A stretch of DNA of 64,000 nucleotides, taken from positions 1-64,000 of IMG/VR virus record IMGVR_UViG_3300024520_000047; one strand, given 5' to 3'. Under the pieces are notes generated by a model. It had not been told where the DNA came from and did no database searches. It saw nothing but the letters and a program-made list of their open reading frames with translations. The translations under genes were made by a program, and so were the position numbers. Shown here in pieces: positions 1,182 through 27,368 of the stretch. Each line of letters opens with the position of its first letter. The first letter of the stretch is position 1.

Positions 1182-1583
1182 TCATCTTATTAATGTTACT
1201 GTTCCTGATTGGGATGTTTTTTTATCTATTTTAAGTTGGTAAACATAGGTTCCAATTGGGCTCGGTTTACCCCTATACGTTCCATCCCAAACTTCATTTA
1301 AATTTGGAGCGGTGAATACTTGTTGACCCCATCGATTATAAATTTCTATTGTGATATGGTTTAACCCCCTACCTATAACTTGAAATGTATCATTTATCCC
1401 ATCATAGTCAGGTGAAAAAACGTTTGGAACAAAAATTGCGTGTTCTTGAGGTACTTTAATGGTATTTGAAATTGAATGGACATGCATTTCATTACTATGA
1501 GCCACTACTCTATAAATGTCATAGTTTTGTCCTAATAAGTTTAAAGATAATAAGGTTAATAGTAGTGTTAATTTATTTTTCAT
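1182..1583 (-). CDS. signal peptide + T9SS type-B (gliding motility-associated, CHU_C-like) C-terminal domain protein
   Basis: Sec signal MKNKLTLLLTLLSLNLLG; C-terminal VPNVFSPDYDGINDTF...IEIYNRWGQQVF...WDG...GTYVY...GTVTLIR matches type-B CTD consensus. Confidence 0.9.
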   Translation of the reverse strand: MKNKLTLLLTLLSLNLLGQNYDIYRVVAHSNEMHVHSISNTIKVPQEHAIFVPNVFSPDYDGINDTFQVIGRGLNHITIEIYNRWGQQVFTAPNLNEVWDGTYRGKPSPIGTYVYQLKIDKKTSQSGTVTLIR

Positions 1584-1589
1584 TTTTGT

Positions 1590-2657
1590 TTAATTATTTA
1601 ATGGTGCTTTAATTGTTGGGTGTGATTGATAGTTTTCTATTTCAAACTGCTCAACCTCTAAATTTTTGAAACTCTCCATTCCTAAATCATCAACTAAATG
1701 AACAGTATATTTCAATGTTGGTAACTCCATAGGTTCTCTTGTCATCTGTTCCTTAGCTTGTTCAATATGATTCTTATATAAATGAACATCACCCAAAGTA
1801 CCAATCAACTCATCAGGAACCATATTAACTTCTTTAGCTATGATTTCAAGCAGTAAACCATAAGATGCTATGTTAAATGGTAAACCTAAGAATGTATCTA
1901 CTGAACGTTGATTCCACATTAGAGAGATTGCTCTGGTTGGGATGTTATGTTTATCACAATTTTCTTTATGTTTTTCTTCGCCATATCTTTCTATTGTTTG
2001 GGGTACAATGTTTTCTTTATACCCTAACAATTTTACCCTCTCTTCCAAACTCAACTCTCTTGTATAAAACTGAAAGAAGTTATGACAAGGTGGAAGTGTC
2101 ATTTGGTCTAACTCACCTACGTTCCAAGCTGATACAATATTTCTTCTAGAATCTGGGTCTGTTTTTAGTAGATTGATTGAGTTTTGGATTTGGTCTGTTT
2201 TTTCTATCCAAACAGCTGAATTGTCTTTTTTAAGCGTTTCCCAATCCCTCCATTGTTTACCATAGATAGGACCTAAATCACCCCACTTCTTAGCGAATTC
2301 ATCATCTGTTTTGATTTTTTCAATAAATGCCTCTTCCTTTGTTATAAATGGACCCCATTCAATTTCTCCGTTATGTTTTTCATAATTCTTTATGGCATCC
2401 CCATTCCAAATATGACAATTATTATCAACAAGGTATTTGATGTTTGTGTCACCACGTAAGAACCATAACAATTCTGTTACAATTCCCTTAAAATACATTT
2501 TCTTTGTTGTTAGTAGAGGATATCCTTCTGACATATCGTGTCTGATTTGTCTTCCAAACACAGATAATGTTCCAGTACCAGTTCGGTCTTGTTTCTCTAC
2601 TCCATTGTCAAGGATATCTTGTAATAGTTCTTGATATTGTTTATCTAGATTGTTCAT
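1590..2657 (-). CDS. thyA: thymidylate synthase
   Basis: DRTGTGT, ELLWFL, LGPIYGKQWR, PDSRR, LPPCH catalytic Cys, QRSVD..LGLPFNIASY, GDVHLY. Confidence 0.98.
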   Translation of the reverse strand: MNNLDKQYQELLQDILDNGVEKQDRTGTGTLSVFGRQIRHDMSEGYPLLTTKKMYFKGIVTELLWFLRGDTNIKYLVDNNCHIWNGDAIKNYEKHNGEIEWGPFITKEEAFIEKIKTDDEFAKKWGDLGPIYGKQWRDWETLKKDNSAVWIEKTDQIQNSINLLKTDPDSRRNIVSAWNVGELDQMTLPPCHNFFQFYTRELSLEERVKLLGYKENIVPQTIERYGEEKHKENCDKHNIPTRAISLMWNQRSVDTFLGLPFNIASYGLLLEIIAKEVNMVPDELIGTLGDVHLYKNHIEQAKEQMTREPMELPTLKYTVHLVDDLGMESFKNLEVEQFEIENYQSHPTIKAPLNN

Positions 2658-5365: not shown

Positions 5366-8300
5366 CTACTCTTCGTCCCATTCAATTTCGTCGGATTCTC
5401 TAGGCCAACTATAAGGAATATCGGTTCCCGGTCTAATATCCTGACTCCCATAAGAATCTTGTTGTCTTTTCCATGGATGTCCGGGGTCTCTATTAATAAC
5501 GGCATTCTCTAAACCAAATAATTTAGCTAATTCCTTCATTTCATCTTTTAGGGTATTAAATCTTTCTCTCCATGAAGTTTCATAAACCTTCCCATCTGGA
5601 TTAATATAATCCGAGTCTCTTCTATTATAGTCTTCAACTGCTTCAGGATGTAACTCTGCGAAGTCTTCCTCATACCTATAAAAGTCGGGCCATTTTGCAT
5701 GGTATCCTATATCTCTCATAGGTATTTCTTCCATGGAGTAAGGGTCATCCAACTTCCCCACTATATCATTCCCCCAATCATCATACTCCTCTTTTTTCTT
5801 ATAAAACTTTAAGATGTCCTTCCAAATATTATCCGCCGTTACACTATCGTCGAGTACTGGAACATAAACATCAATGCGTGCTTCGCCTGGCATATTCCCC
5901 GGCACCGTACTTAGATAATAATCAAACCCCAAAAAATTAAATGGAGAATTCTTCACCAAATAATTGTTCAATGCGGTCACTGGTTCCTGTGGTGTCGGGT
6001 CCACATTCATAGCATAATGTTGTTTACCTCTTCTAATGGACCATGGTGGTTCACCTTTGGGGTGGTCTAGTTCTTGCTTTTTGTTGTCTCTATTAAAGGG
6101 AAAATCCTGTTCATTCAATTCTTCTCTTCTAAAGGTGGGATTATAAATCCATGTATCAGTGGGGTATATTCTTTTCTCTCTTCCCATCCATTTGTTTACT
6201 GCTGTCCCAAACCTCTTATCTTCGTCGGTGAGGCCTATAGGTTCTATTTCATAATATTTTAAATCAGCATCAGGACCTTCCCAGTTTTCGGGTTGTCGAA
6301 ATTTAATAGCCGTAACCACATAAGGTTCATATAAGTCAGGTTTTCTTCCCCCTGTCGTATATTTTCTTCTCCACCCTATACTCTCTATTACCATTATCTC
6401 ATCTCCTATCATTAATTGTGGGTTTACTTTATCTTGAGATTGTTCATTTAATTCTTCTCCTCTAGAGTCTGGTCTTAACATCCATGTGTCGTTAGGATAA
6501 AGATGTGTCAATCTCCTCCATCCTCCACCCGCCCTTAAATCGGCTTGCATTTCTTCAGGGGTCAATTCTTTACGTTCTATTTCATAATGTACGTATTTGT
6601 CGTTAAAGGTATTGTTTTTTATTGATTCTTTGATTTTCACTACTACATAAGGGACATATATTTCTGGTGGGTTGAAACTTGCTCCTTCAGGTTGGTTGTG
6701 TTGAAGTACGAGTATCTCATCTCCTATCATTAATTGGGGATTAAGTTTATCTTTAGTATGTTCTTGTAATACTTCGGGGTCTTCTACTTTTACCCATTTA
6801 TCAAAATAGGGTGCAATCACTTTATAACCTACCCTTCTCCCTTCTGTGTATCTCAATAACTCGTCCTCATCTTTCTTATCCATTAACAACCATAATAGTT
6901 GGGTACCTTCATCTATGTCGAGACCAGACCCTTCATATCCTCTAGTCCAGCCATATCTGGGACTACCTCCACCTCTTCCCTCTGTACTCCACTTCATTTC
7001 CTCATTCTCATCTATTACAGTATAAGTGTGATATAACTTGGGGAATCTTTCAGAAGTAATAATCTGCATACCATTCATAAACTCCCGTCTTTGGTCACTA
7101 TCTTCATCTACATCTATAACCTTAATTTTATCACCCGGTTTTAAAGGAGGATTAACTTCTACTTTCTTACTATCTTGTTCTTGTAAAGATGGTGGTGTGG
7201 GGGACATAATGTACCTCACTTCATTAGGATACAACCAACGAAAATCGTACCCACCTTTTTTGTGTGACTTCTTCCACTTGTTAATTTCAGATAACGGTAA
7301 AAGAAGATATCTCTTCCCTCGTTCCTCCACTCTTTTTCCGTATGCCCGTTCCCTCCCGTGTTCCTCCGTTTCTGGCGTTTTTTGTATAATCCTATAAGGG
7401 ACGAATAAGTCTGGTTGTGTAGTATGGGTTTCTATGTCATCTCGATGGTACCAACCCCTTCCTTCGTGCCACTTAAACCCCATTAACTCTGCAGTCTCTT
7501 CATAATTATGCCAATCTCCTTGCAAGGTATCTTTGACTTCCTGATTCTCCATAAATTCCTTTATTTCGTCGTCCGTCATATATTCAACATCTGGGTCTTC
7601 ATATGCCACTACCGTTATCGTATCTCCCACATTTATGTAGGGATTAACTTTTTCTTGATGTTCTTGTAAAGATTTTGGGGTGGGGGGAGAAATGATGTAT
7701 TTTTCTTCCGAAGGGTACAGCCAACGATAATCTAATCCCTTCACTCGTCCAGAGGCCCATATCTCCCTCTTTTCGTCCTCATGTTCTTCCACTTCAGGTA
7801 GTGTTAAAAGAAGATATCTCATCACATCTCCTTCTTTCCATCCTATTTCTACTTTTTGTACAATCCTATAGGGTACGAATAAGTCTGGATTCTGGTCATT
7901 TAACTCCTTTTTATGATACCATCCCTTACCTGGCCATCGTGTATAGCCCATTAACTCTGCAGTCTCTTCAAAATTATGCCAATCTCCTTCCAATGTATCT
8001 TGGAGGTCCTGATTCTCCATAAATTCCTTTATTTCGTCGTCTGTCATATATTCAACATCTGGGTCTTCATGTGCAATTACAGTTACAGTGTCCCCTACAT
8101 CAATTGGGGGATTAACTTTTTCTTCCTGTTCTTGTAATATTTCTTCTTCCTTATTTACTATTATCCATTGGTAAGGGCCTGATGCCTTTAATTCTTCCTT
8201 TCCGTCCTTTTCCCACTCTTGCCTTCTCCCCCTCTTTCTTTCTTCTCTACTTATTCCATATCCCCATATATCTCCTTTTATTTCTCCTTTCCATGGGTCT

Positions 8301-11300
8301 CCTTGTATTCTCTTTCTTCCTGTTGGTGCCTCATTATTATATACTATATCCTCCACTACATAATTTACAAATAACTCTAACAATTCACCATCATTCAACA
8401 CATATCCATCATCATCCACTATCTGTTCATTCCTATTAGTCCAATAGGGTAGGACTTCACCAGATGCAGCGTTGTCTATAAGTTTTATTACATCCCCTAC
8501 CTTTAATGTAGGTCTACTTATCGGTTGGGATTCTTCATTTAAAATTTCTTCTTCCTCTCTTTTAAAACCAGGACGGAATATCCATTCATCTCCTACTTCA
8601 TAAATAATCTTAGTAGTCATTGTCCATAACCCCTTCCTTTTCCCTTTCTCATCCCAATTCTCCACTTCCCACCTTTCTTTCTCATCGTCCCAATAGGGAA
8701 ATCTACCACTCATAGGTTCAATGTGATAACTAAGTTTCCCTTTAGTGCGAGGTTCCCTAACTCTTTTTATTACCTTATAAGGTATAAAAGTCTCTGGTTC
8801 ATTCTCATGGGTACCATCTACATGTAAAACAATAATCTCATCTCCTTCTTCTAAGTCTGGACTAGGATTTTTTTGTCTTTCTTCCTGTAGGTGAGCAATG
8901 GATGGCTCGTACTTACCTATTTTTAACCACTTATGTCCATTTACTATCATATCCTGATGTAAATTGGCATCGTTAAAGTCTACAAGTAAATCGAGCCTCA
9001 TTACTACATACCCATATACTTGTCTCTTATCCCAGCCTTTATCCCCCTCACCTGTCACTATCCATCCTTCAGCACTTCCATCGTGCCATAATGGGGTTAA
9101 CACCACATACTCATCCCATAAGTTAAGATAACTATCCTTGTCTGTCTTCTCTATTATTTTAATCATATCTCCCGGTTCCAATGGGGGACTAATCTCTCGT
9201 TCCTCTTGTTCTTGTAATACATCACCCCTCAATTTACGTTTGGCGTTGTCTTTGTACTTCGCTCTTTCTTCATCAGATAATTCTACCTTTAACCATTGGT
9301 GGTCACGGTCACGACTTAAGACTTTTAAGTGACGATGGAGGTGACCTGGTAATCCTGGTGTGTCTTGGAACTTTTCCAAATACCCACTCTGTTGTAATTT
9401 ATACAGGTCCTCTATGGTAATAACAATATAATCTCCTTCTTTTTTTGGGGTCCCATATGAAGGATGCCATACCCAATACAATGCAAATGGTGTGGGCGTA
9501 CCGAAAGGCGTTTGTTCTTTTCTTTCTGGTATATCTATAGGTCGTATGATGTCTCCAGATTTTAAAACAGGACTCACTTCTTCTTCCCTTTGTTCCCGTA
9601 ATGTTTTCTTAATATCTTTATTTGTATCAGTTTTTACAATTTCTTTGAACTTATCCAAATAAACTATTCTATCCGAATCTACATTTATTAATTGAGTATT
9701 TGGGGTTAGGTATTTATCTTTAACTTTAATATAGTATACACCATCATCCTTTATACCCAAATCACTTATGAAACCATCAATATAATTTTCATCGTCTATG
9801 CTCTGAGACAATAACCCCTTTAACCCATTCTTAGTTAATTCAGTTGATGGGTCACCTTTGTTTTCATCAGGTTTTTCTTTTGTTGCCTCATACTTCTCTA
9901 AGTATTGGTCTAGTGCTTTAGTGGGCTCTCTCCAATCGGGGTCTTCTTTACCTACTTCATTTCTACCCACTATATTATTGATGAGCATATAGATGGGTGC
10001 ATGTAAAAGTATATTATGCTTAATATTTGGAACGTACTTCAAAATATCATTAGTGACATCATCAAAAATTACCTTATTCCACTTTCCAGTCTTAAACTCT
10101 TGTGCCATATACCAAGCAGCAGCGTTTGCATTAGGACCACCAACATACTCATTTTCTTTTGGGTTTGGTGGTACATCTTCGCCAGCTTTCCTATAGAGTC
10201 CAGATGTTATTCCAAAATCATGACCCTTTGCCCAATCCCTAATACTTGGTGGGTCAAACGCTAATCTTCTTTCTTCATTTTCAGGAGTGTAACCATTGAA
10301 ATCATCTGATGCAATAATAACCCATTGATTAGGGTCTGTAGCTTTATGAAAAGGTACCGCTTTTAATTCCTTACTTACCCATGATTTACCAGCAGATGAT
10401 GTTCCATCTATTAATATAGTAGATTTATCACTTAATCCTTGTTCTCTTTGTTCCCGTAATGTTTTCTTAATATCTACCCCATGCTTAGGTCCCAATGGTG
10501 GGTCCAATAAAAACTTCTGGTTAAGATAATCTCTTAACAAATTTTCCACAAACCAATCTGGAACTGGTTCATCATCTGGTTGGGCTGCAGCAACATCTGC
10601 AACATATCGTGCAAATTTAAGTTTGTATTTATCCCTAATCATTTCCAGTAATCCATCCGAGACAAAGAAAATTTTACTCAAGGGGTCATCACCCAATGCA
10701 ACATCAGGAATGTAATCCCCTTCAGCAATGTCCATGGCTTTGAGTACTACCTTCCCCCACCATCGTTTATATCCTTTGGTATCTTTAAGTGCTGGAGTAA
10801 CAATTTTATTTAATGCTCGGGTAGCGGTAATCCCCACCGCCGCAAATAAAACCTGAGGTAAAAAGAAAGGAATAATTCTCCATAATGATTTAAAAACCCC
10901 TCTACCGATATCGCTTGCTATTCTTTTATTGGTAGCTGCTTCCACCAATGCTTTAAGTTGACCAAAGGTAATAGGTCCTTGTGCTTTACAAAATCCTTTT
11001 ACATTACAAATATTTTCGGTTACGTCTCTTGATGGTGCAACAAAGCCTGATTCTGGGTCTGTCTCACTTCCTTCATATTCGTACTCATCTTCATAATCAG
11101 TTTCTTCATCGTCATCGGGAATCTCAATTTTTGCTACGTCTTCTTCCCATTCTTCTTCAGTATCATATGGTTGTAACTCTATTGGTTCTAATAGGCCTTG
11201 ACCAAACATATCGGCTGCTTCATGGATGTACTCCTTGGGTGGGAAGTGGTCTGGTCTAGTAGCGCCCTTTACGGTTACATAATTAACCCCTATACCTGTT

Positions 11301-14300
11301 GCATTTAAAAGGTCTGTTATATTCTCCTCTAAAACCTCCACTATCTCTTGTCGTACTTCCTCTTTCAACGCTTCATCTGGTTCATCACTAACGCGATTAG
11401 CACGTGTAAGGTCATCCTCTGACTCGTCCCGTACACTTCTACGTAAACCACATGTTCTACATTCTTCTTCATAGTCACCATCTGACCACCACTGGTGGTC
11501 ATGAAAAATGTCCCACAAAGTATAAGTGTCGTGTCCACCCAAAGCTAAATTGGCCATTCCACCACCATCTACTATTACAAATACCCCTATCTCATCCTCA
11601 ACACTCCACCCTCGTTCTTTCCGGACTTTCTTTTGGTCTACATTCCATGGTAGTTCTTTCTCATCAATAGAAGTAACTACATACTTAAAATCATATCCAC
11701 CATCCCAAACCTCCTGTATTCCTTTTAATTTTTCCTGAGCGACTTCGATGGCTTTCTCTCTCCCTCCATGCCATTCAACCAACCACTCATCTATTATCTT
11801 ATAAAGTCCTCTTTCTTTACGGGTATCTAATCCTAATAATTTAAGTATATGTGGGTCATTATGTGGTCCTTTATTATCCCAATAGTTAAAAAGTGATTCC
11901 TTAAAATGTGCATATATTTTTTTTAGCTGGTTGGGCGATTTCGCTGGGTTAATATTTGGAAAATCGGAGTCTTCATTAAACAACATTTTTTTATGCTCTT
12001 CTTCCTCTAATAATCCTTTAGTCAATGTTCTTTTTTTATCTTCATCAAGTCGGTCATTTTTTCCTGACGCCGTTATCTTACCTGCGTTACGTTTTTCTCT
12101 CCAAAAATTATCTACAACTATTTGGGCTTCATGCCATGTCAAACCCGCGATGTGGGTAATACTTCGTATTGCATCCGTGAACTGTCCTTCTCCAAAAGGA
12201 TAGTATTCATTAGGAACCACCGTAGGGAATTGGGTATCTAACCACTCATAAGCATTTTTAATATGTTCTTCCTTAGATAGGATATCCTCCAACAAGAGAT
12301 TTTGTACCCACTTAATGACAGTGGAATGCAAACTCATTCTTCCAAAAGGAGAACGGTCCCAGGGAATGTACCCATCTCCAGTATAGTCCCAGACATTAGA
12401 TTGACCTGTCCATTGGGGTATCCGCCTATTACTATATAAGATAAATTGAACTTCCTTTAGGAACTGTTTAATACTCGCATCACTAACTCCTCCCACCAGT
12501 TTTTCTCCATGTTCCTTTCCTAGAGTATAGAGGTTATATAATTTTAAAAATTTATCTTTGTAGTTATCATTTAAAAATTGAGTAATCTCTTCGTCAGTAC
12601 GTCTAGAAGAAGTGGATTCGGCTAAACCTTGATAGGTAACATCACTTATCTCACTATCTATTATCTCGTGTTCCCCGTAATCATAGGTATCCACTTCACC
12701 GTTCCAATCATAAAATTCATCACGACCTCTCTCATATGCATCATCTTCATCGAACGCCATAATCTCAACACTTCCTCTTCTATATTCAGTTTGGTCCACC
12801 GTTTCCTCATAGTCGACATTATACCATTTGGGTAACTCTTTGAAGGGAGCTTTTATTTTACTATAATCCCCTAAGTCTTCCGCGAAATCCCAATTATCAG
12901 AGGCCCATTTCGCATACTTGGAGGCGTCCACTCTCTGTTCCATCCCACGTGTACCGGGGCTGGTTTTGATACCAAATAATTTCATTAGGTCTACCCATCG
13001 TTTGGCTAACTGGTTACCCCCATAAGCAAAAGTATTAGTAGAAATATGGGATAACTCATTTCTGGTAAAGGTGGATTTAAGTGTATTTAATATTTTACTC
13101 TCTACGGGAGTAAAGGCACTTCTGTCCATTCCTTCTGCTTCTTCATCGGTCCAACTATCCTTATTTCTATCTTGTTCGGTAAGGGGTTGTTCTTTAATAA
13201 GTTTCTTAATCTCTTCTGCCAATCCTTTATACTCTGCACTGGTGGTCTCATGCTCAAATCTTTCAGAATCTCCATAATCATCTACATCAGTGTTACCACC
13301 CCAATCAAAGAATTCCCTGTTTCCTTTATTCAAGGCATCGTCTTCATCAAAGGCAATTAAATCTACATCTCCGCTTTTAAATTCTACTTGACTTACCGTT
13401 TCTTCATAATTTACATTATACCATTTGGGTAAGACTTTAATTGGTTTGGTTACCTTGGAATAATCCATTTCCCCATCCTCTCCTCTAATCTCCTCATCCC
13501 AATTGTCTAATGCCCATTTTGCGTATTTGGATGCTTCAGCTTTCGGTTCCATCTCTCCCCATCCCTCAGGCATCGTATGCCCGAATAACTTCATAGCATC
13601 TTTCCACCTCTTACCTATATTACCAGAATAAGGATATAAATCCGTACTTGTAGTTATTTGAATCAAGTCCTCTTTAGTAAAATTCTTTGCCAGAAAATTT
13701 AAAATAGCAATTTCTTTTTTGGTGAAAGGACTGTATGAAATGCCTTCGTCTTCTTCTTCCCATTGGTCATCTTCATGAACCTGTTCCTGCAGGGAAGTAC
13801 TTTCTTTACGTAGACTAAATGCTGTGGGGTCGGTTAAATTAGGCTCTTGTGGTTCGGGAATTTCTACATACCCACCAAATCCAACGAAAGCATCGGGTCT
13901 GTATTGTTGTGCAATATTTTCTAACCATTCATTTAATACATAAGGAACTGGTAATAAAACAGCATCTCTATTCCATTCTTTTCTATAATCTATTAATCCC
14001 AACTTAGTTAAACGATGGTCAAACTGAGTTAACTCGTGGTCAAATCCATCATACGGTGAACCGTGAGCATAAATCTCCTCATAGTCATCAGGGTCTTCTA
14101 TTCTTCCTGCCGCAATCTCCTCTGCTATTCCTTTGTAGAAAGATTCCAACTCTTCCAGATGGTTCTTGACGAATTTCTCCACTTCCGATTTTTCATGTCG
14201 GTCTAAATAGTGAATAAAAGTTTCTACAGGTACCTCCAATGCACGGTTGTTAGGTTCTGGGTTATGTTCGGGAGAATTTCTAAAGGATTGTGAATTGGGT

Positions 14301-14485
14301 TCTCTAGTAGGGAGGAGAGGTACCATTCCCTTCATGTGTTCCTTAAGGGTTGTTTTTGTTGGAGAATAGGTACGGTGGGGAAATAAGGGACCTATACTGT
14401 CTTCATATAAATGTAACTTTTTTCTTAAGTCAGTACCCATAAGACCTTGGTCTAATGCATCTTTTATTTCACTTAGTGTCGGCAT
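5366..14485 (-). CDS. giant acidic modular polyprotein P1 (3039 aa): 2 B-repeats, P-loop (CPT-like) kinase module, 9 A-repeats, other modules; LxE linkers
   Basis: Uninterrupted ORF; repeats and linkers visible in translation; IDGTSSAGKS Walker A at ~10380-10420. Confidence 0.9.
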   Translation of the reverse strand: MPTLSEIKDALDQGLMGTDLRKKLHLYEDSIGPLFPHRTYSPTKTTLKEHMKGMVPLLPTREPNSQSFRNSPEHNPEPNNRALEVPVETFIHYLDRHEKSEVEKFVKNHLEELESFYKGIAEEIAAGRIEDPDDYEEIYAHGSPYDGFDHELTQFDHRLTKLGLIDYRKEWNRDAVLLPVPYVLNEWLENIAQQYRPDAFVGFGGYVEIPEPQEPNLTDPTAFSLRKESTSLQEQVHEDDQWEEEDEGISYSPFTKKEIAILNFLAKNFTKEDLIQITTSTDLYPYSGNIGKRWKDAMKLFGHTMPEGWGEMEPKAEASKYAKWALDNWDEEIRGEDGEMDYSKVTKPIKVLPKWYNVNYEETVSQVEFKSGDVDLIAFDEDDALNKGNREFFDWGGNTDVDDYGDSERFEHETTSAEYKGLAEEIKKLIKEQPLTEQDRNKDSWTDEEAEGMDRSAFTPVESKILNTLKSTFTRNELSHISTNTFAYGGNQLAKRWVDLMKLFGIKTSPGTRGMEQRVDASKYAKWASDNWDFAEDLGDYSKIKAPFKELPKWYNVDYEETVDQTEYRRGSVEIMAFDEDDAYERGRDEFYDWNGEVDTYDYGEHEIIDSEISDVTYQGLAESTSSRRTDEEITQFLNDNYKDKFLKLYNLYTLGKEHGEKLVGGVSDASIKQFLKEVQFILYSNRRIPQWTGQSNVWDYTGDGYIPWDRSPFGRMSLHSTVIKWVQNLLLEDILSKEEHIKNAYEWLDTQFPTVVPNEYYPFGEGQFTDAIRSITHIAGLTWHEAQIVVDNFWREKRNAGKITASGKNDRLDEDKKRTLTKGLLEEEEHKKMLFNEDSDFPNINPAKSPNQLKKIYAHFKESLFNYWDNKGPHNDPHILKLLGLDTRKERGLYKIIDEWLVEWHGGREKAIEVAQEKLKGIQEVWDGGYDFKYVVTSIDEKELPWNVDQKKVRKERGWSVEDEIGVFVIVDGGGMANLALGGHDTYTLWDIFHDHQWWSDGDYEEECRTCGLRRSVRDESEDDLTRANRVSDEPDEALKEEVRQEIVEVLEENITDLLNATGIGVNYVTVKGATRPDHFPPKEYIHEAADMFGQGLLEPIELQPYDTEEEWEEDVAKIEIPDDDEETDYEDEYEYEGSETDPESGFVAPSRDVTENICNVKGFCKAQGPITFGQLKALVEAATNKRIASDIGRGVFKSLWRIIPFFLPQVLFAAVGITATRALNKIVTPALKDTKGYKRWWGKVVLKAMDIAEGDYIPDVALGDDPLSKIFFVSDGLLEMIRDKYKLKFARYVADVAAAQPDDEPVPDWFVENLLRDYLNQKFLLDPPLGPKHGVDIKKTLREQREQGLSDKSTILIDGTSSAGKSWVSKELKAVPFHKATDPNQWVIIASDDFNGYTPENEERRLAFDPPSIRDWAKGHDFGITSGLYRKAGEDVPPNPKENEYVGGPNANAAAWYMAQEFKTGKWNKVIFDDVTNDILKYVPNIKHNILLHAPIYMLINNIVGRNEVGKEDPDWREPTKALDQYLEKYEATKEKPDENKGDPSTELTKNGLKGLLSQSIDDENYIDGFISDLGIKDDGVYYIKVKDKYLTPNTQLINVDSDRIVYLDKFKEIVKTDTNKDIKKTLREQREEEVSPVLKSGDIIRPIDIPERKEQTPFGTPTPFALYWVWHPSYGTPKKEGDYIVITIEDLYKLQQSGYLEKFQDTPGLPGHLHRHLKVLSRDRDHQWLKVELSDEERAKYKDNAKRKLRGDVLQEQEEREISPPLEPGDMIKIIEKTDKDSYLNLWDEYVVLTPLWHDGSAEGWIVTGEGDKGWDKRQVYGYVVMRLDLLVDFNDANLHQDMIVNGHKWLKIGKYEPSIAHLQEERQKNPSPDLEEGDEIIVLHVDGTHENEPETFIPYKVIKRVREPRTKGKLSYHIEPMSGRFPYWDDEKERWEVENWDEKGKRKGLWTMTTKIIYEVGDEWIFRPGFKREEEEILNEESQPISRPTLKVGDVIKLIDNAASGEVLPYWTNRNEQIVDDDGYVLNDGELLELFVNYVVEDIVYNNEAPTGRKRIQGDPWKGEIKGDIWGYGISREERKRGRRQEWEKDGKEELKASGPYQWIIVNKEEEILQEQEEKVNPPIDVGDTVTVIAHEDPDVEYMTDDEIKEFMENQDLQDTLEGDWHNFEETAELMGYTRWPGKGWYHKKELNDQNPDLFVPYRIVQKVEIGWKEGDVMRYLLLTLPEVEEHEDEKREIWASGRVKGLDYRWLYPSEEKYIISPPTPKSLQEHQEKVNPYINVGDTITVVAYEDPDVEYMTDDEIKEFMENQEVKDTLQGDWHNYEETAELMGFKWHEGRGWYHRDDIETHTTQPDLFVPYRIIQKTPETEEHGRERAYGKRVEERGKRYLLLPLSEINKWKKSHKKGGYDFRWLYPNEVRYIMSPTPPSLQEQDSKKVEVNPPLKPGDKIKVIDVDEDSDQRREFMNGMQIITSERFPKLYHTYTVIDENEEMKWSTEGRGGGSPRYGWTRGYEGSGLDIDEGTQLLWLLMDKKDEDELLRYTEGRRVGYKVIAPYFDKWVKVEDPEVLQEHTKDKLNPQLMIGDEILVLQHNQPEGASFNPPEIYVPYVVVKIKESIKNNTFNDKYVHYEIERKELTPEEMQADLRAGGGWRRLTHLYPNDTWMLRPDSRGEELNEQSQDKVNPQLMIGDEIMVIESIGWRRKYTTGGRKPDLYEPYVVTAIKFRQPENWEGPDADLKYYEIEPIGLTDEDKRFGTAVNKWMGREKRIYPTDTWIYNPTFRREELNEQDFPFNRDNKKQELDHPKGEPPWSIRRGKQHYAMNVDPTPQEPVTALNNYLVKNSPFNFLGFDYYLSTVPGNMPGEARIDVYVPVLDDSVTADNIWKDILKFYKKKEEYDDWGNDIVGKLDDPYSMEEIPMRDIGYHAKWPDFYRYEEDFAELHPEAVEDYNRRDSDYINPDGKVYETSWRERFNTLKDEMKELAKLFGLENAVINRDPGHPWKRQQDSYGSQDIRPGTDIPYSWPRESDEIEWDEE
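6395..6736. repeat. 24-bp direct repeat at starts of A-repeats 8 and 9 (encodes QLMIGDEI)
   Basis: tatctcatctcctatcattaattg at 6395-6418 and 6713-6736. Confidence 0.85.
7380..8140. repeat. recent tandem duplication of A-repeats 5 and 6
   Basis: ~7480-7620 and ~7950-8090 near-identical; both encode EDPDVEYMTDDEIKEFMENQ...DTL.GDWHN.EETAELMG. Confidence 0.9.
9588..10475. repeat. perfect 30-bp direct repeat flanking the P-loop kinase module
   Basis: ctttgttcccgtaatgttttcttaatatct at 9588-9617 and 10446-10475; both lie in DIKKTLREQRE linkers. Confidence 0.95.
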
Positions 14486-15807
14486 TAAGAAGTATATTTA
14501 TCTAATGCCTCTTGTGCTTGACGGCCTCTTTTATTTTGGTTTACTCTACTTTGATTACTGGGTCTTTCAAAATTTACCATAAAAGAAGCGCCCGCATCTG
14601 ATGCATTGGTCGTTGTTAATAAAGCATTATATGCTTTTTTCTCTTTTCCTTGGAGTTCACTCCATAAATATTCTAATTGTGCGTCGGGGTCGGTAATAGG
14701 TTTTTGTTGTTTTTTCGCAAAGTCATTTAATCTATATAGTCTAGTGTCATGCCATTGTGCGAGCCCCATAGACGTTCCTCTGTCTCCAATAGTACCCGTC
14801 TTAAAATTAGACTCAGATTTCATATTACCCGCAATTCCCGCCGCTTGTTCGGGGGTCAAACCTTTATTAATAAAAAATTTAATGACGTGATTAGAATCTA
14901 TTTGTTGATTACCGGGGTATTTTTTCCCTTTCAAAGGTAATATAAAATTAGCGTCAGGTTCTATTACACCTTTTCTTTCTAATTTTTGTACTGTAGTGGG
15001 GTCATTTATCTCGGGATTGAGATTAATTTTCTTGGGGTCTTTCATCGCTCCCAACACATCAGGGGTTATCATATCAGTAATCTTAAAACCATAATCTTTC
15101 TGAAATGCATTCACCGCTGCTAAAGTTTCGGGACCAAATTTCCCATCTATGCCAAACTTAGGTAATATATAATTTCTCGCAATTAAATCTATTTGCATTT
15201 CTTTTACCTTATCCCTAACATTCCTTCTTCCCCTTCTCATTCCATCTGATAAAGTAAGATTACCTTGTGGTATATTTTGAATTTCTATTTTTTCTTTTGG
15301 TTTTCTTCCTATTCTTTTAATAGTTACACCATCTAAGTAAGGTACAGGGTCAGTAGTAGAACTCCCTTTAGCTTTATCATACACTTCATAATGTAGATGT
15401 GCTCCAGTAGATGAACCGGGACAGTAGTCTCTTTTTCCTCCTCCAGATAATCCAATAACTTGTCCTTTACTTACCGATTCACCTTTGTTAACCCGGATAT
15501 CTTTAATGTGACAATAACGTGTTTTCAATCCTGCACCATGGTCAATGTATATATTACCACCACACGCCCCCTTGGTACATTGAGCTTTAATAATCACACC
15601 ATCTGCTGGGGATAATACTTCGGTTCCACTTTTTGCGTTAATATCTACCCCATGGTGTTGTCTCGTTTTTTTAGTAATGGGATGCACTCTTATACCATAG
15701 GGACTGCTAATTTTAAGACGGCCAGCCAATGGTGGCCCTAAACTAACTTCTACCTCTTCATTTAATAGAATTCTATTTAATTGTTTTTCAGTTATTAATA
15801 TTTTCAT
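14485..15807 (-). CDS. M23 peptidase + peptidoglycan-binding domain + phage-tail-type lysozyme
   Basis: HHGVD (HxxxD) and HLH of M23; DGKFGPETLAAVNAFQ PG-binding; AAGIAGNMKSES...GLAQW tail-lysozyme motif; leader MKILITE...ILLNEE. Confidence 0.9.
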   Translation of the reverse strand: MKILITEKQLNRILLNEEVEVSLGPPLAGRLKISSPYGIRVHPITKKTRQHHGVDINAKSGTEVLSPADGVIIKAQCTKGACGGNIYIDHGAGLKTRYCHIKDIRVNKGESVSKGQVIGLSGGGKRDYCPGSSTGAHLHYEVYDKAKGSSTTDPVPYLDGVTIKRIGRKPKEKIEIQNIPQGNLTLSDGMRRGRRNVRDKVKEMQIDLIARNYILPKFGIDGKFGPETLAAVNAFQKDYGFKITDMITPDVLGAMKDPKKINLNPEINDPTTVQKLERKGVIEPDANFILPLKGKKYPGNQQIDSNHVIKFFINKGLTPEQAAGIAGNMKSESNFKTGTIGDRGTSMGLAQWHDTRLYRLNDFAKKQQKPITDPDAQLEYLWSELQGKEKKAYNALLTTTNASDAGASFMVNFERPSNQSRVNQNKRGRQAQEALDKYTS

Positions 15808-18989: not shown

Positions 18990-19062
18990 AGCGGAAGGAT
19001 AGGATTTGAACCTCCGTCCCCATACTGGTAGTATGGTGCTTTACCAATTAAGCTACTCCCGC
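18990..19062 (-). tRNA. tRNA-Gly, anticodon ACC (atypical; one-nt bulge in T-stem; CCA not encoded)
   Basis: GCGGGAG acceptor/CTTCCGC + U73; D-arm GCTT/AAGC; anticodon arm CCATA-CTACCAG-TATGG; T-loop TTCAAAT. Confidence 0.8.
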
Positions 19063-19066
19063 TTAT

Positions 19067-19430: not shown

Positions 19431-20000
19431 ATGAATCCCAACCGTATAAAATCTATCCGCCGCACCTATATTATATTTTCTATAATAGTAGGAATTGTTG
19501 CTCCTATTTTATGCTATTGGTTAATTCCTCATTTTGACATAAAACACGACCCTTTATCTAAATTTGGTATCTCCGAACCCACTTCCCATATCTGGTTAGT
19601 CTCATTAATGTTTATTGCCATTGGATTATGGTTAAATGGGGAATATCGGATTGGGGAAATGATTAAGAAAAAAAAATGGCGTCCTTTATTGAAGTGGTTA
19701 CTGAGAATTTCTACTTTTTCATTATTATTAATGGCAGTAATAGATATGAGTTGGCACTGGACACATAAAACTTTAGCTTTACTTTTTTTCTGTGGATATA
19801 ATGTTTTTGTGTTTGCCTTTGGTATTGTGCGTTCTTTAACTTATGTTAGAAGAGGAATGTTTTCAGTAATAATGGCTACGCTTATGTTATCCACATCTTT
19901 ATTAATTCTTCCATTTCCAAGTTATGGTGTTGCTGAAATATCATATATATTTCTGATAGTGCTGTGGAACACTAAAGTCTTATTTAGGAAAAAATTATAA
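19431..20000 (+). CDS. polytopic membrane protein (DUF998-like)
   Basis: ~6 hydrophobic helices; PLSKFG and H..LALLFF motifs resemble DUF998. Confidence 0.6.
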   Translation: MNPNRIKSIRRTYIIFSIIVGIVAPILCYWLIPHFDIKHDPLSKFGISEPTSHIWLVSLMFIAIGLWLNGEYRIGEMIKKKKWRPLLKWLLRISTFSLLLMAVIDMSWHWTHKTLALLFFCGYNVFVFAFGIVRSLTYVRRGMFSVIMATLMLSTSLLILPFPSYGVAEISYIFLIVLWNTKVLFRKKL

Positions 20001-23000
20001 GGTTTCTTTCCATAAATTTATTAATCGGTTAGCAGTTGGTATTATGTTGCGTTTGGCTTCTCTAAGAGTTACTTCTTTATTTTTATTTTTAAGAGAATGG
20101 ATGGTGGTATCCCAGATAAGGTTTTTAATTTTATCACCATCTTCACTTAAGAGTCCACTATCCTTTTTTAATACAGTAGAATAGGTATCAATCCAGTCTT
20201 TTCCACCAATTAAAAAGTGGGAATAAAAATTCTCATTTGTCATCTCTTTATTTTTAACTTCACTTAAAAAATCAAAAATTAGTTTTCTTTTTTCAACTAG
20301 TTGGGCTGTGGTTACGTGTTGGGAACGTACTTTAATAAAAGCAGTTAAATCCATTTTATCAAACGACTCAAAGAACCTCCTTTTTATTAAAAAATCCTTT
20401 TGGGCTGCTTGTAAATGTCTGTTAACCTCTTCTGTCATATCTCCACGCAACTTTCCTCCCATTGTAAGGGTGTAGTCCGACTTTTTCTCAAAGTCTCTTA
20501 AATCGAAGATATTAATTGTATCTCCAATTTGAAATGGGATATTACTTAGGTTACCACTCTTTGCAATATCAACTATTTTCCCAGTTGGTGTCATATAAAG
20601 TAAAAAGGTCTGAGAGTTTTTACCCCAACCACCTTTGTATTCAAATCTTCCAATGATTAATAATCGTCTAATATAATTAGGAATGTTAGGTCTTTCTTCT
20701 TCTGGTAATTGTGGAATAATGGCTTCCGTTAACGGAGTGTTCCTGATGATAATCCATTTATCTCTCCCTCCTCCATCATCAGCATAATAATCATAGTCTT
20801 CTACTCCTTGATATAATCCCAAGTGTCCATCGTAAGTATCTATCTCGTATTTAATTCCTCCTCTAAACATATCACCTCTCGGTTCTTCGGATGCATTGCC
20901 TTCATATACATGTACCACGATTCCTACAGTAGTATTGGGTATCGTCAGTGTTGTAGTTCCGGGAGGTGCGGGGTCCATTTCTAAGTCCCAAATAAAAATT
21001 TTATCTCCTACTTTAAGTGGTGGACTTATTTCCTCTTTGGGTATTTTGGTGGTATCGATTTTTTGTTCCTTTAAAGTATTGAAATGATAGGCATCCGTAA
21101 TCTCCCAATCATCCGATTCATAATCTCCATGCTCATAGGTATGCATTTCTCCGCCCCACCCATAAAAATCTTCCCTCGATTTCTCTTCCGCATCCGTTGC
21201 TCCAAACGCGGTGACGTTTGCGCTACCCCTTTTAAATACTTGTTCCCAACCACTTTCTTCTGCCTCTACTTCATATTCGGAGGGGTATTCTTTTCTTGCA
21301 TTTTTAATTTGTCCATAATCTCCATCGTCTGCTTCGTGTCTATTCTCTAGTGCCCAGCGTGCATATTTGCTTATTATTGTCCAGATTTGAGCACTTCCCT
21401 CTCCACTGTTGGGTTCACCAAATAGTTTCATTACATCCTCATATCTAGAAGTAACTTGCCGTTGTATATCAGTTTTAAAAGTTCTGGTGGCAATTGCTTT
21501 TAATTCATCGAACGTAAATTCTCTAACAATAGTATTTAATATTTTAACTTCGAGTGCGGTAAAAGGACCATACTCTACATATAAGTCATCATCCTCTAAT
21601 CCACTCTCGGCATCTTGTTCGTTCAATCTTCTGGATGTAATATTCTTGCCACTAGCATCAATTTCTTTTTGTCGTGCCTCTATCTCTTGGGGTATATTGG
21701 ATACATGTTTTTTCACCATAATCCACTTATCGTTAGTCGTAAGGATTCTATTTCCCCTATCCCATTCAATATTTTCTCCTGTTATTGGTAACATGTTCCA
21801 ATACAAATTACGGAAGGTGGGTTCATTTCCAAAAGTTATTTGTTCTGTATTCACGGGTTCGGGAGAAGTAACATAATAAGTCTCCATGATAGTAGGAAAA
21901 GTATCTTCCCCATGTAATTCACCTCTACTTCGCGTTCTATACATGCCAGAACCTGCAGATTGTTTATATCTGGTATCTTTATCTACATCTACCACTCTAA
22001 TAACGTCTCCAATATTTAAAGATGGATTAAGTTTTTCTTTCTGTTCAGTAATCGGTTTTTTATGAACCTTAATCCATTGGTATATCCAAGGGTATAATAG
22101 TTTTGCGGTACCTCTACCTACCATATAGTCCCCATTTAAATAATCTTGATGTTTGTCTGCTGGAAGAAGTGTATATCTCCAAGGCCACTGTGCTTTGTGC
22201 CCAGCAGACTCTTTTTCTACTACTATGTATGGTGTTAATATCTCAGGTCTTTCCGCTTCTCCTCGCCCTTTCATCCTCTCCCTCTCCCTGTCTATATCTA
22301 TTACTCGTATACTATCACCCACTTCTAACTCTGGACTTAATTGGGTTTCTTTTTGTTCTCTTAAAATATATGGTGTGTCACCACCCCATATTTCTACTTC
22401 CTTGCCTACCCCTTTATCATTTCCTTCCCACTCGCCTGTCAGTGCAACCAATTCCATGTTGTCTATCCTCTCTATTATTTGACGTGCCCAAGCTTTTACA
22501 ACAGGGTTGGGGGTTAATCCTCTTAAACGATTATAAGATATGAAATCTCTTTCATCTGGTGGACCAATATTCGTAGTATCAATTAATCCTAATTTATATA
22601 AATCTTCATTGATGGTACCCCATAAATCATATAATTCCATTTGAGCCGTTTCAATTTTATCCGCCAAAAGGCCTATCTCACCTCTTCCTCCTTCTCCTCC
22701 ACCGAATCCACCGTATTTAAAATTTCTTACTCCACCTTCAGTATATGAGTCCTCATAACTGGTGAGTAAAAGTTTAGCTGCTAGAGCTAATTTCTTATAT
22801 ATTCTGAAAACCTCTTGTGTATAATTCTGGTGTAAAAACTTCTTTAGGGGTAAATTCTCACTCTGTTCTTTTATGGTTTCCCGATGTGTAGTACTTTCTA
22901 TCTCCCACCCATCAGATTCCCAATCTCCATAATCATAGGTCTCCATCTCACCACCCCAGTCGTACCAATCAGCTGTAGCCCTATCAGTCACATCCTGTGA

Positions 23001-26000
23001 ACTAAATCCGGGTATATCAACAGAACCGTGTTTGAATATTTTTTCCCATCCGCTTTCTTCCGCCTCTACTTCAAAGTAAGAGGGATAAATTTTAACTGGA
23101 GTTTTAACCTGTGCATAATCTCTTTTTTCATCGACCTCACCTGCAGCTTCACCCCAGTTATCCACCGCCCATCTTGCATATTTGCTCGCTATTACCCAAT
23201 CCTCCATGGTACGAGCGGGTATCGAAAATAATTTCATTATATCATTATATCTCTCTTCTAAGGCACGGGGTAAATTAGCGGCATCACTCTCCCCAATCAT
23301 CTCTAAGTCCTCTGAGGTAAACTCTTGGGCTAACTTATTCAATAACTTGACTTCCATGTTGGTGAAGGGAGTAAAGTCATAGTATTGGTCGTCATCATAG
23401 AATCCTTTATCTTTACCAAATTCCATTTTTTCTTCGTCTAACTGTAAACCTCCACGGTCTATCTTGCTCAATGCATCTAAATTCCCAAAGGAAGGATGGT
23501 CGGTTATCTTATCTTTTTTACTTTGTCTCATTACATCCCATACTCTAGGCTTCATCTTCATGTGATTACTCACCATATACCCTATCTCTTCTGGGTCACC
23601 ACCTAAACTCTCAATGAATTCACTATACTCATTCACTAACTGGGTGGAAACTTTTTCATGACCATGTGCGGTAGGTTGTCCTGTTTTAGGATTTACACCT
23701 AATGTGGCTAACTTACCTAGGTCATGAAAATATGCTGACAAAATTAAATTTATATTCTCAGGTTGTTCAGCAAACGCTCGGTTGGTTACCGTAATAATAT
23801 GTTTAAGTACATTTCCTTCTGGATGCCATTCAGGATTTTGTTTGGCCTTCCATTGGTCCATTAATATTTGTTGTAATGGTCTGGGTGAAGCATTGTATAA
23901 TTCTTTAAAGTTAGTCACTGATTCCCCTAATAAATCGATGTCATCATCCCACATCCCTTTATTTTTCTCCACCAGAATCCATGTATCGGTGTCGGGCATT
24001 AGATATCTCATGATTGCCTTATTTGAAAGAACACCGGGGCGGTCGGGGTAAGACACATCTTTCATGGGTCTATTAATACCATACCAATATTGGTCCCGCT
24101 TGGGTGTAGTGGTAACCCTATAAGGGACAAACAGTTCAGGAACTTGGTCGGGTATTTCTCCTTCTTTATCTTTAACATCTATTACTATTATCTCATCTCC
24201 ACTTTCTAAGGGTGGGTTTACTTTTTGTTGGTCTATGTTCTCGGTGAGACTTGCTGGGTCTGTAGGTTTTGGTGGGCCGAAATTTCCCTCATCATCTTTT
24301 GCCGATGGTTCTTTACTTTGAGGGACCAATTCATACAAGTCATCATATAAGATGTCATTAAAATATTCTTCACTAATATCTGGGTACCAATAACCATCAA
24401 AGTATTTTCCATCTACCTCTAAGTGGTCTCCCCGTTTACCCTCATTATAGTCATCTCCTCGTCCAAACTCTTCTATCATAATCTCCCCAAAAAGTTGGTC
24501 TGGAGTAAGACGTGCCATGTCTCTCATTACATCTTCCAAAGGTCGACTAGCATAATCTTCATGAAACTGAAAGAAATCTGTATTATCCCAATCGTCATCA
24601 CTTATCCACCTTTTTAAGTCACTTTCTATTATCCACGAATAACTTCCATTATTATTATCTCTTACCCATTTTCCTGTTCCGTCGAACCAGTCCTCTATCT
24701 TATCCCGAATATCGTCAAAGATGGCACGTTTGGTTGCATCTTCCTGTTCTATACTATAGGCGCGGGTAATCTTATTTCTAATTTCATCTATCTCACTCTC
24801 TTTTTCGGCAGCAATATCATCCTCAAAATCATTGTCTACATGACCCTCCAATAGTCTGCCGGCCACTTCTTTATCTTTAATCCCAAGAATTTCCATAATC
24901 ATTTTCCAACTTCCATCATCGAGATTATCTAACATCCCCTCATAAAATTCGTTATGGTCATACCATCCATCCCAATCCCATGCGTCCTCACCACACAGAT
25001 ATTTCCGTATGAGTTCTTCATGATTGTCATCATCAAATAATCGAGCTAAATCATCACAATCCCATAATGATGTTACCGGAATGGGTGCTTGAGTATTCAT
25101 TATGTATCTTTTGAGTAACATGGTGACACCATCTCCTTGGATGCCTTGCATCCCTAACAGTTTAAGGTCTTCCCAACTTACCCCATCTTGGTCCCATTTT
25201 TTATAAAGATATTTAACTGCATTTTCAGGATAATCTTTCATTATCCATTCTTTGTCTTCATCTTCCATTACTGAATCAAAAGGCCATCCTCCATGAAATA
25301 AATCTAATTGTTGTTCTTCTTTAATAACTTCTACCGAAGTAGTATCGTTGAGGGTATCTCTGTCTGGATAAAGAGCATCATTAAGGAGTTCTAAGTGATA
25401 TTCCACCTCCGCATCGTGGTCTGCCCAATTAATAACCATACCCTCTTCATCAAAATCAAAATCACCTTCTAATTGGTACTCGGTGGTATCATAATATTGA
25501 CTCATTAATTCTACTGTCTCCTCATTTGCGTTCACGGTATCAGTTAACTCATCAATGGTATTAAGATATTCCAGTTCTACAGTACTCAAATATTCTGCTT
25601 GTAACTCTTCATAATAATACTGGTCTACATATTTATCTTCCATTTGGTCACAGTCACACTTTCCTTCATCTTTTTCATCCTCCGTACATTCCCTATACTC
25701 ATCTTTTTCATCATCATAAAACTCAGTCCACTGTATACATTCACAGTCCTCCTCACTTAATTCACCATAAAAATGACCCCCACTTTGGAGACACTCTTCT
25801 AATATTTCTTCTGACTCAGCCTCTTCAGCATAAAACTCTACAGTATAGTAATAGATATTCGGTAGAGGTTCCCATAATAAATTCGTTATATTCCAATCAC
25901 TAAAGCCCCCACCTTCTTTAATTATCAACCATAAGGTCGCAGCTATCTGTTTTCCATCACTACTACTAAAAATTCCCCCCACATCTAGATATTTCCGTAA

Positions 26001-27368
26001 AGTATTGTAAAAACTATCGAAGTGGTATAAACTTTCATTTAAACGATGAGCGGTTCTTATTAGAGAAATTATCTTTGGGGTTATCTCTCCCCCATCATTG
26101 TGAAATTCGTATTCTTCCTTTAAATATCTTTTAGGTGTGGTGTCTTTGGAATAAACCCATGTATAATTGCCGGGATACAAACTTTTGGGGTCTACATTTA
26201 ATTCGTAAAGAGTATCTAAAGTTATGTCATCCCAATTTTCAATTTTAATCCTTTCCTTCCCTACATCCTCATATTCTGTGGGGGTAAGAAGAGTATAGTA
26301 GGTGTTACGGTTTTCATCGACACTTACATTAACCACCATATAAGGGGTAAGTAATTCTGGTACGTCTTGCCACTCGATATCATCATCTCTATTATACCAT
26401 CCCATCTGACCTGCGTCCCACCTATATCCAGCATTCGCAGCGAGTTCCTCTAGACCACCACCTACTACATAACCCTGTGTTTCTAATACATCAGTTAGTT
26501 CTTCATCCGACAGGTAATGACTACGAAACCCTTTACGGTCAATAACCACTATCTTATCCCCTACTTCTAGTTTAGGGTTATGTCTCCATAATTGGTGTTG
26601 GTTTCTAATATTTTCTTCCTTTAGGGTTGGTGGTAGGGGGTCATTCGTTCCTAGGTCCAATAAAGCGTAATGACCATTCTTCATTCCCAAATTACTAATT
26701 CCTATATCCAACCATCGTCTTCCAGTTGCTTCAATTTCTTTACGAATATTAACAATGTCGTCATACACTTGTCGGCATTCGGGAGACCCATCTACTGGTG
26801 GGTGAATAAGAGCTTTTCCTGTAGGGTCCGAATAAAAATCTACATAAATAGGATTGTCTTCTCTACAACAACATCTAGTGAACATCTTTTCTTCAGGTGT
26901 GGTTGGGTGGGTTAGGAGTTCTAAAACAATAATATACGCTTGACTACTATCTGATGTATAATAAGGAGTCTTAAAAGGGGCGGTAGCAAATACATTTGCT
27001 ACATATTCATTTTGTTTACCTTTTAAACTTTGTGCTTGACGGTGTTCAGCTTCATCTCCAGTAATTTTAATTACTTTATCATCATCAAGAAGTGCAGCAA
27101 TACCATTTCCACCACTAATAATATCAATAACGTCACCTAAATTATTATCAGTAATGTAATCCTTTAAAACCTTCTTAGGGTCAGCACTAAATTTAACTTT
27201 TCCGTGTTCAGCGTCTATTATATATTCTTCCGTATCCGGTACATCAATAGACTGATAAATGTCTTTACGTAACTCAGGGTCATTTCTAAAAGACTGGTCT
27301 ATCGCAACCTGTAATCCCGGGTCTAATTGTTTGGGTGATTCTTGTAATATATTAGGAGATTGTCTCAT
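19995..27368 (-). CDS. giant acidic modular polyprotein P2 (2457 aa): protein-kinase-like, HD hydrolase, 5 A-repeats, 2 B-repeats, Cys-rich module; LxE linkers
   Basis: Kinase motifs SGGNG/VIK/DIGISN/DLG; HD motifs WHPEG...HDLGK...HGHE; repeats visible in translation. Confidence 0.9.
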   Translation of the reverse strand: MRQSPNILQESPKQLDPGLQVAIDQSFRNDPELRKDIYQSIDVPDTEEYIIDAEHGKVKFSADPKKVLKDYITDNNLGDVIDIISGGNGIAALLDDDKVIKITGDEAEHRQAQSLKGKQNEYVANVFATAPFKTPYYTSDSSQAYIIVLELLTHPTTPEEKMFTRCCCREDNPIYVDFYSDPTGKALIHPPVDGSPECRQVYDDIVNIRKEIEATGRRWLDIGISNLGMKNGHYALLDLGTNDPLPPTLKEENIRNQHQLWRHNPKLEVGDKIVVIDRKGFRSHYLSDEELTDVLETQGYVVGGGLEELAANAGYRWDAGQMGWYNRDDDIEWQDVPELLTPYMVVNVSVDENRNTYYTLLTPTEYEDVGKERIKIENWDDITLDTLYELNVDPKSLYPGNYTWVYSKDTTPKRYLKEEYEFHNDGGEITPKIISLIRTAHRLNESLYHFDSFYNTLRKYLDVGGIFSSSDGKQIAATLWLIIKEGGGFSDWNITNLLWEPLPNIYYYTVEFYAEEAESEEILEECLQSGGHFYGELSEEDCECIQWTEFYDDEKDEYRECTEDEKDEGKCDCDQMEDKYVDQYYYEELQAEYLSTVELEYLNTIDELTDTVNANEETVELMSQYYDTTEYQLEGDFDFDEEGMVINWADHDAEVEYHLELLNDALYPDRDTLNDTTSVEVIKEEQQLDLFHGGWPFDSVMEDEDKEWIMKDYPENAVKYLYKKWDQDGVSWEDLKLLGMQGIQGDGVTMLLKRYIMNTQAPIPVTSLWDCDDLARLFDDDNHEELIRKYLCGEDAWDWDGWYDHNEFYEGMLDNLDDGSWKMIMEILGIKDKEVAGRLLEGHVDNDFEDDIAAEKESEIDEIRNKITRAYSIEQEDATKRAIFDDIRDKIEDWFDGTGKWVRDNNNGSYSWIIESDLKRWISDDDWDNTDFFQFHEDYASRPLEDVMRDMARLTPDQLFGEIMIEEFGRGDDYNEGKRGDHLEVDGKYFDGYWYPDISEEYFNDILYDDLYELVPQSKEPSAKDDEGNFGPPKPTDPASLTENIDQQKVNPPLESGDEIIVIDVKDKEGEIPDQVPELFVPYRVTTTPKRDQYWYGINRPMKDVSYPDRPGVLSNKAIMRYLMPDTDTWILVEKNKGMWDDDIDLLGESVTNFKELYNASPRPLQQILMDQWKAKQNPEWHPEGNVLKHIITVTNRAFAEQPENINLILSAYFHDLGKLATLGVNPKTGQPTAHGHEKVSTQLVNEYSEFIESLGGDPEEIGYMVSNHMKMKPRVWDVMRQSKKDKITDHPSFGNLDALSKIDRGGLQLDEEKMEFGKDKGFYDDDQYYDFTPFTNMEVKLLNKLAQEFTSEDLEMIGESDAANLPRALEERYNDIMKLFSIPARTMEDWVIASKYARWAVDNWGEAAGEVDEKRDYAQVKTPVKIYPSYFEVEAEESGWEKIFKHGSVDIPGFSSQDVTDRATADWYDWGGEMETYDYGDWESDGWEIESTTHRETIKEQSENLPLKKFLHQNYTQEVFRIYKKLALAAKLLLTSYEDSYTEGGVRNFKYGGFGGGEGGRGEIGLLADKIETAQMELYDLWGTINEDLYKLGLIDTTNIGPPDERDFISYNRLRGLTPNPVVKAWARQIIERIDNMELVALTGEWEGNDKGVGKEVEIWGGDTPYILREQKETQLSPELEVGDSIRVIDIDRERERMKGRGEAERPEILTPYIVVEKESAGHKAQWPWRYTLLPADKHQDYLNGDYMVGRGTAKLLYPWIYQWIKVHKKPITEQKEKLNPSLNIGDVIRVVDVDKDTRYKQSAGSGMYRTRSRGELHGEDTFPTIMETYYVTSPEPVNTEQITFGNEPTFRNLYWNMLPITGENIEWDRGNRILTTNDKWIMVKKHVSNIPQEIEARQKEIDASGKNITSRRLNEQDAESGLEDDDLYVEYGPFTALEVKILNTIVREFTFDELKAIATRTFKTDIQRQVTSRYEDVMKLFGEPNSGEGSAQIWTIISKYARWALENRHEADDGDYGQIKNARKEYPSEYEVEAEESGWEQVFKRGSANVTAFGATDAEEKSREDFYGWGGEMHTYEHGDYESDDWEITDAYHFNTLKEQKIDTTKIPKEEISPPLKVGDKIFIWDLEMDPAPPGTTTLTIPNTTVGIVVHVYEGNASEEPRGDMFRGGIKYEIDTYDGHLGLYQGVEDYDYYADDGGGRDKWIIIRNTPLTEAIIPQLPEEERPNIPNYIRRLLIIGRFEYKGGWGKNSQTFLLYMTPTGKIVDIAKSGNLSNIPFQIGDTINIFDLRDFEKKSDYTLTMGGKLRGDMTEEVNRHLQAAQKDFLIKRRFFESFDKMDLTAFIKVRSQHVTTAQLVEKRKLIFDFLSEVKNKEMTNENFYSHFLIGGKDWIDTYSTVLKKDSGLLSEDGDKIKNLIWDTTIHSLKNKNKEVTLREAKRNIIPTANRLINLWKETL

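Follow-up and report, generated by a model that had tools for sequence, protein, structure and literature searches.

Cargo proteins of the T9SS are thought to carry their C-terminal sorting domain (CTD) in cis. Published work shows that type B CTDs (TIGR04131; CHU_C in Pfam) pair specifically with cognate PorP/SprF shuttles, remain bound to them, and determine the final destination of the cargo, that is, whether it is loaded on the gliding track or anchored statically (PMC9143113, PMC12618676); examples are SprB-SprF, Fjoh_3952-Fjoh_3951 and PG1035-PorP, although orphan type B cargoes also exist (PMC12618676). Very small proteins made of little more than a signal peptide and a T9SS CTD, such as PorA of P. 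gingivalis (246 aa) and Fjoh_0547 (112 aa), show that proteins of this kind can have roles other than carrying cargo (PMC7712824). Phage-encoded T9SS cargo has been reported only for type A CTDs, in the 'Cryophage' of Bacteroidota (PMC7468147). We describe here a gene of a marine jumbo phage, of bacterial host origin, which encodes a tiny protein, predicted to be exported, that combines a type B CTD with two predicted beta-strands missing from a giant surface adhesin of marine Flavobacteriales; it is inferred, from sequence and models alone, that the phage protein can enter the export or anchoring pathway of that adhesin.

The gene was identified in the first 64 kb (the window, 64,000 nucleotides) of IMG/VR virus record IMGVR_UViG_3300024520_000047, a 245,874-bp record rated 77% complete by CheckV; it holds only this one CHU_C gene. 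An ATG-started ORF of 133 aa plus stop lies at 1182-1583 on the minus strand. By inspection of the sequence, residues 1-18 (1530-1583, minus strand; MKNK, 13 hydrophobic residues, then LLG|Q) read as a Sec/SPase I signal peptide with predicted cleavage before Q19, a residue conserved in at least 90% of 115 family members, in agreement with the Bacteroidota habit of Gln at +1 of SPase I substrates. Residues 51-130 matched Pfam CHU_C (PF13585) over profile positions 2-85 of 86 (E 4.9e-21, 75 bits against a cut-off of 27), and residues 52-133, up to the last residue of the protein, matched TIGR04131 over positions 3-85 of 85 (E 1.1e-17, 64 bits against a cut-off of 35), whereas the type A model TIGR04183 remained below its cut-off (19.9 bits against 23). 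The CTD thus occupies residues 51-133 (1185-1433, minus strand) and ends in the family's GTV.LIR tail. An AF2 model of the protein (pLDDT 84 overall, above 90 over the CTD and about 70 over residues 20-50) predicted a beta-sandwich CTD, for which Foldseek matches included solved T9SS CTDs (8glk_D, 5m11, 6za2, 4ief), among them the NucA CTD in the translocon (8glk_D, TMt 0.68), PorZ, PorU and RgpB. The sequence-only reading of this ORF, namely a signal peptide, about 30 further residues and a complete type B CTD, is therefore confirmed, the intervening stretch being 32 residues long.

The phage nature of the record is supported by PHROG hits, and the region was found in at least six seawater metagenome runs; in that search, which was not directed at RNA, only DNA runs were listed. 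The nearest cultured relatives by thyA are Flavobacterium myophages. A thymidylate synthase gene (1590-2657, minus strand) ends 6 nt upstream of the ORF on the same strand, with no terminator-like site in between, so that the two are probably co-transcribed. Elsewhere in the window, a 440-aa protein (14485-15807, minus strand) contains an M23-type metallopeptidase part (residues ~30-165) and a part (~305-440) that matches tape-measure and endolysin PHROGs, and may be a virion-associated cell-wall hydrolase. A tRNA-Gly(ACC) gene (18991-19063, minus strand) and an ORF (39222-40655, minus strand) matching phrog_850, labelled 'RNA-binding protein' (E 2e-149) and read here as RtcB-like, together hint at a tRNA-repair or tRNA-supply module. 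Two giant ORFs, of 3,039 aa (5366-14485, minus strand) and 2,457 aa (19995-27368, minus strand), are also present, the first of which contains many repeats of a module of about 100 aa (LQEQ..V.P.L..GD.I.V ...) and very acidic stretches.

To examine whether the 32 residues between signal peptide and CTD (residues 19-50; 1434-1529, minus strand) are merely filler, we searched for homologues among proteins of similar length. This search returned 230 homologues of 130-160 aa, the closest at 80-88% identity over the full length, placing the ORF far beyond chance; identity to bacterial members was 46-54%. In an alignment of 28 of them, comprising phage and bacterial members, Y24, R25, S37 and N40 were invariant and A28 and S39 nearly so, defining the motif YR..A.SN ... 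S.SNTI.V (YR..A.[SK]N ... S.SN for the family as a whole; YRVVAHSN ... SISNTIKV in the phage protein). Over 115 members, pairwise identity within the phage-like clade was 0.60 for residues 19-50, 0.69 for the CTD and only 0.41 for the signal peptide. The protein is not 'cargo-less': these residues carry a conserved motif, almost as conserved as the CTD. The data also bear on the possibility that the gene is a non-functional scrap of host DNA, for which its differing position among related phages and the absence of any matching PHROG family could be cited: the frame is intact, with a signal peptide, in about 50 clusters (90% identity) of the phage-like clade, the domains are more conserved than the signal peptide, and the gene occurs in several jumbo-phage contigs and in many metagenomes. 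We consider this possibility very unlikely.

The bacterial homologues, of about 150 aa, are found in marine Flavobacteriales MAGs (Crocinitomicaceae, 'MED-G20' and others), on chromosomal contigs, where they form part of a cassette. The gene order is a hypothetical protein of about 170 aa, a PKD-repeat protein of about 1,950 aa with a signal peptide, the small CHU_C protein with its own signal peptide, in some genomes a LytTR response regulator, and PorP/SprF; the small gene is thus next to, or one gene away from, a PorP/SprF gene. The first of these, a conserved protein of about 170-190 aa with a signal peptide and no Pfam or NCBIfam hit, always precedes the giant gene (L003 1509-2042, L006 1558-2061, L082 922-1506 and L083 1470-1979, where L numbers denote individual loci or contigs) and may be a further component of the system. 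In one bacterial sub-lineage the CheY-LytTR response-regulator gene is inserted between the small CTD gene and PorP/SprF (L077 8471-9238, L078 3954-4721, L079 2119-2883), which suggests that the cassette is under two-component control. In a 358-kb MAG contig (L002, 2141-7964) the giant adhesin and PorP genes are broken into several ORFs, reflecting either a pseudogenised cassette or errors of a long-read assembly.

The giant proteins carry no T9SS sorting domain by Pfam or NCBIfam, and in 11 aligned genomes, in which they are only 33-94% identical, they all end at the same point, '..N..IID[PQE]*'. To understand this common end, a profile of the last 64 aa of the giant was used as a query; it hit ordinary, unsplit type B proteins 138-153 residues before their C-terminus, which is about the length of a mature small subunit. 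The giant C-terminus followed by the mature small protein aligned collinearly with these proteins, the junction falling in a loop (the E-F loop) just before the YR..A strand. An AF2 model of one unsplit relative (pLDDT 86) showed a seven-stranded sandwich in which the motif forms the last two strands (80-89 and 94-103), directly followed by the CTD, and the best PDB matches of this model were tandem FN3 pairs. The term 'FN3-like' rests on this model and on Foldseek, as Pfam gave only a weak fn3 match to the unsplit C-termini (E 0.046, in L131). A profile-profile comparison (hhalign) of the small family against the last 160 aa of the giant yielded no signal, the hairpin being too short for that test. 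Residues 19-50 of the phage protein accordingly correspond to the predicted strands F-G of an FN3-like domain, strands A-E of which are encoded, in bacteria, at the end of the separate giant gene.

A natural control was provided by the GTDB family of the L077 genome, in which 26 of 61 species genomes hold the giant's terminal module. One of these (L158, on a 4.4-Mb contig) encodes the unsplit orthologue, a single 2,182-aa ORF with half-domain, hairpin and CTD in a row, followed by PorP, whereas in two others (L159 and L160) the giant lies on the opposite strand, head-to-head with the small gene and PorP. The alignment of all forms is collinear through the junction. We also considered whether the split could be a sequencing or recoding artefact. 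This was rejected, since the spacing between the two genes varies from 8 to 98 nt, each small ORF has its own signal peptide, and the head-to-head arrangement excludes read-through or frameshifting. The split is therefore a real, old and stable two-gene state derived from a normal type B adhesin, and not an assembly error.

The short family occurs in several large viral contigs (L009-L015 and L004), at different genome positions, and the neighbours of the gene are not conserved among phages, so that context gives no functional clue beyond thyA in this genome. In a weakly resolved tree (11 of 25 inner branches open), six viral copies form one clade (support 85/86), while one further viral copy groups with the bacterial copies of the L077 type (92/88), suggesting at least two captures. 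Profiles of the giant's end and of PorP found no homologue in the 246-kb phage record or in the flanks of the related viral loci; the phage copy is thus an orphan of the family, without an adjacent shuttle gene, and its partners must be host proteins. Many other viral contigs (L016-L076) encode larger type B CTD proteins, each with a signal peptide, in families of about 187-190 aa, 302-309 aa, 400 aa, 660-830 aa (N-terminus ...YSQYCP.LGPDQ.LPCGV) and up to about 1,030 aa; phage-encoded type B cargo appears common, although some of these contigs may be misassigned bacterial DNA. Two uncultured huge phages, LR756502.1 (642 kb) and LR745206.1 (635 kb), each hold 3-4 places that match the CHU_C protein, and each also matches the thyA region.

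Taken together, the analysis establishes the architecture of the protein, its homology, the synteny of the bacterial cassette, the split point and the conservation, whereas strand complementation, passage through the T9SS and its dependence on a shuttle, and any effect in infected cells are inferred. In the proposed host mechanism, both proteins reach the periplasm by Sec; a sandwich lacking strands F-G cannot be a finished domain, a Sec-exported adhesin without a CTD has no known route through the T9SS, and the neighbouring gene supplies exactly the missing strands fused to the missing signal. The simplest reading is that the small subunit completes the half-domain by beta-strand complementation, and thereby lends the adhesin its type B signal and its PorP/SprF anchor in trans. 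This idea is supported only indirectly, by the collinear alignments and by the model of an unsplit relative. A single complex prediction of the L077 giant C-terminus, L077 PorP and the phage protein gave scores of 0.80-0.83, with 0.00 and 0.11 for controls in which the partner was replaced and 0.80 for the control in which PorP was replaced; it is not counted here for or against the model.

The phage, having captured only the small subunit, with a mature part of about 115 aa, would express it probably with early or middle genes, as it lies directly downstream of thyA, and the protein would enter the same pathway, where it may compete with, or replace, the host subunit at the adhesin's open C-terminus and at the cognate shuttle. 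In this view the phage would decide whether, and where, the giant adhesin is displayed on the infected cell. The phage subunit could act as a competitor that uncouples the adhesin from the shuttle or re-routes it, and could equally act as a working spare part. We hold this explanation to be somewhat more likely than not. The direction of the effect is a guess that cannot be read from sequence; we lean, tentatively, towards interference (less display or re-routing) over maintenance of display. The phage protein keeps every family-invariant residue, but lacks about 6 residues of the E-F loop present in the bacterial subunits and has a 5-residue deletion in the last CTD hairpin, and may therefore bind one partner and not the other.

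One alternative is a pure decoy, along the lines of the sequence-only reading, in which the CTD is the only working part and occupies the PorP/SprF shuttle or the SprA translocon one-to-one, blocking export of host type B cargo, while the hairpin is only a folding cap. The complete CTD, the requirement of type B cargo for a shuttle to which it stays attached, and the absence of partner genes from the phage are in line with this model, and competition for a shuttle is mechanistically plausible. However, a mere cap would be free to drift, whereas the hairpin is nearly as conserved as the CTD in the phage-like clade, with the same invariant residues as in the bacterial subunits, which argues that binding the adhesin matters; furthermore, phages kept exactly the bacterial split-subunit architecture rather than an arbitrary CTD fragment. 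We regard a pure decoy as unlikely. That earlier interpretation is thus supported in part: its link to PorP/SprF is real, but the likely target is the giant adhesin and its own shuttle in marine Crocinitomicaceae-like hosts, not SprB and gliding of Flavobacterium johnsoniae, and none of the present findings bears on phage susceptibility.

Another possibility is that the phage copy is a fully working substitute, an auxiliary gene which keeps the adhesin on the surface (for particle attachment or aggregation) while host gene expression is shut down. Retention of the invariant residues of the hairpin and the CTD, the location with nucleotide-metabolism genes, as is typical of auxiliary genes, and the probable repeated capture favor it; the shortened loop and CTD deletion in the phage protein's clade speak against it, the benefit of more adhesin within one lytic cycle is unclear, and nothing shows that the host subunit is limiting. 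This scenario also appears unlikely.

A conserved two-gene arrangement in which the CTD and the last two strands of the passenger's final domain are a separate secreted protein would be the first trans-acting T9SS signal; literature searches for trans, 'piggyback' or phage-encoded type B T9SS cargo found nothing relevant. It offers a case of strand complementation in the periplasm of Bacteroidota that can be tested directly, and suggests a practical tool, a short portable tag pair (half-FN3 plus hairpin-CTD) for loading proteins onto the T9SS in trans. Capture of just this piece points to a new way for phages to manipulate the surface of abundant but poorly studied marine Flavobacteriales, by supplying the 'address label' of a host adhesin. 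In its boldest form, which we consider possible but doubtful, a whole group of marine Flavobacteriales would export a giant CTD-less adhesin by snapping on such a label, and during infection the phage label would outcompete the host's on the open half-domain, swapping or removing the adhesin's destination, for example by releasing or stripping a receptor or attachment factor.

When compared to described systems, the protein belongs to the type B CTD family by sequence and predicted fold, and its bacterial homologues share the adjacent PorP/SprF gene, which is frequent in the family but not obligatory; in the known cargoes, however, passenger and CTD form one polypeptide, whereas here the CTD and the last two strands of the preceding domain form a separate 115-aa protein. 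The 'Cryophage' proteins (Bellas et al. 2020, PMC7468147) likewise have T9SS sorting domains and presumably use the host's secretion system, but these are type A CTDs on full enzymes or PA14 proteins, that is, real passengers, while the present protein is type B with only a half-domain and derives from a host adaptor-like subunit. The CTD of PorA binds PorV, the type A shuttle, and PorA has a complete FimH-like N-terminal domain (PMC7712824); neither PorA nor Fjoh_0547 is described in that paper as the split-off end of a neighbouring adhesin. By analogy only, and without homology, donor-strand complementation in chaperone-usher and type V pili also completes an incomplete Ig-like sandwich with strands supplied by another protein in the periplasm, but here two strands (F and G) are missing rather than one, there is no chaperone or usher, and the donor carries a secretion signal rather than being the next pilus subunit. 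Again by analogy only, in Tat 'hitchhiker' co-export (e.g. of NiFe hydrogenase subunits) a subunit without an export signal is carried by a partner that has one, through a system that moves folded proteins; that machine and membrane are different, and its partners are complete folded subunits, not two pieces of one domain.
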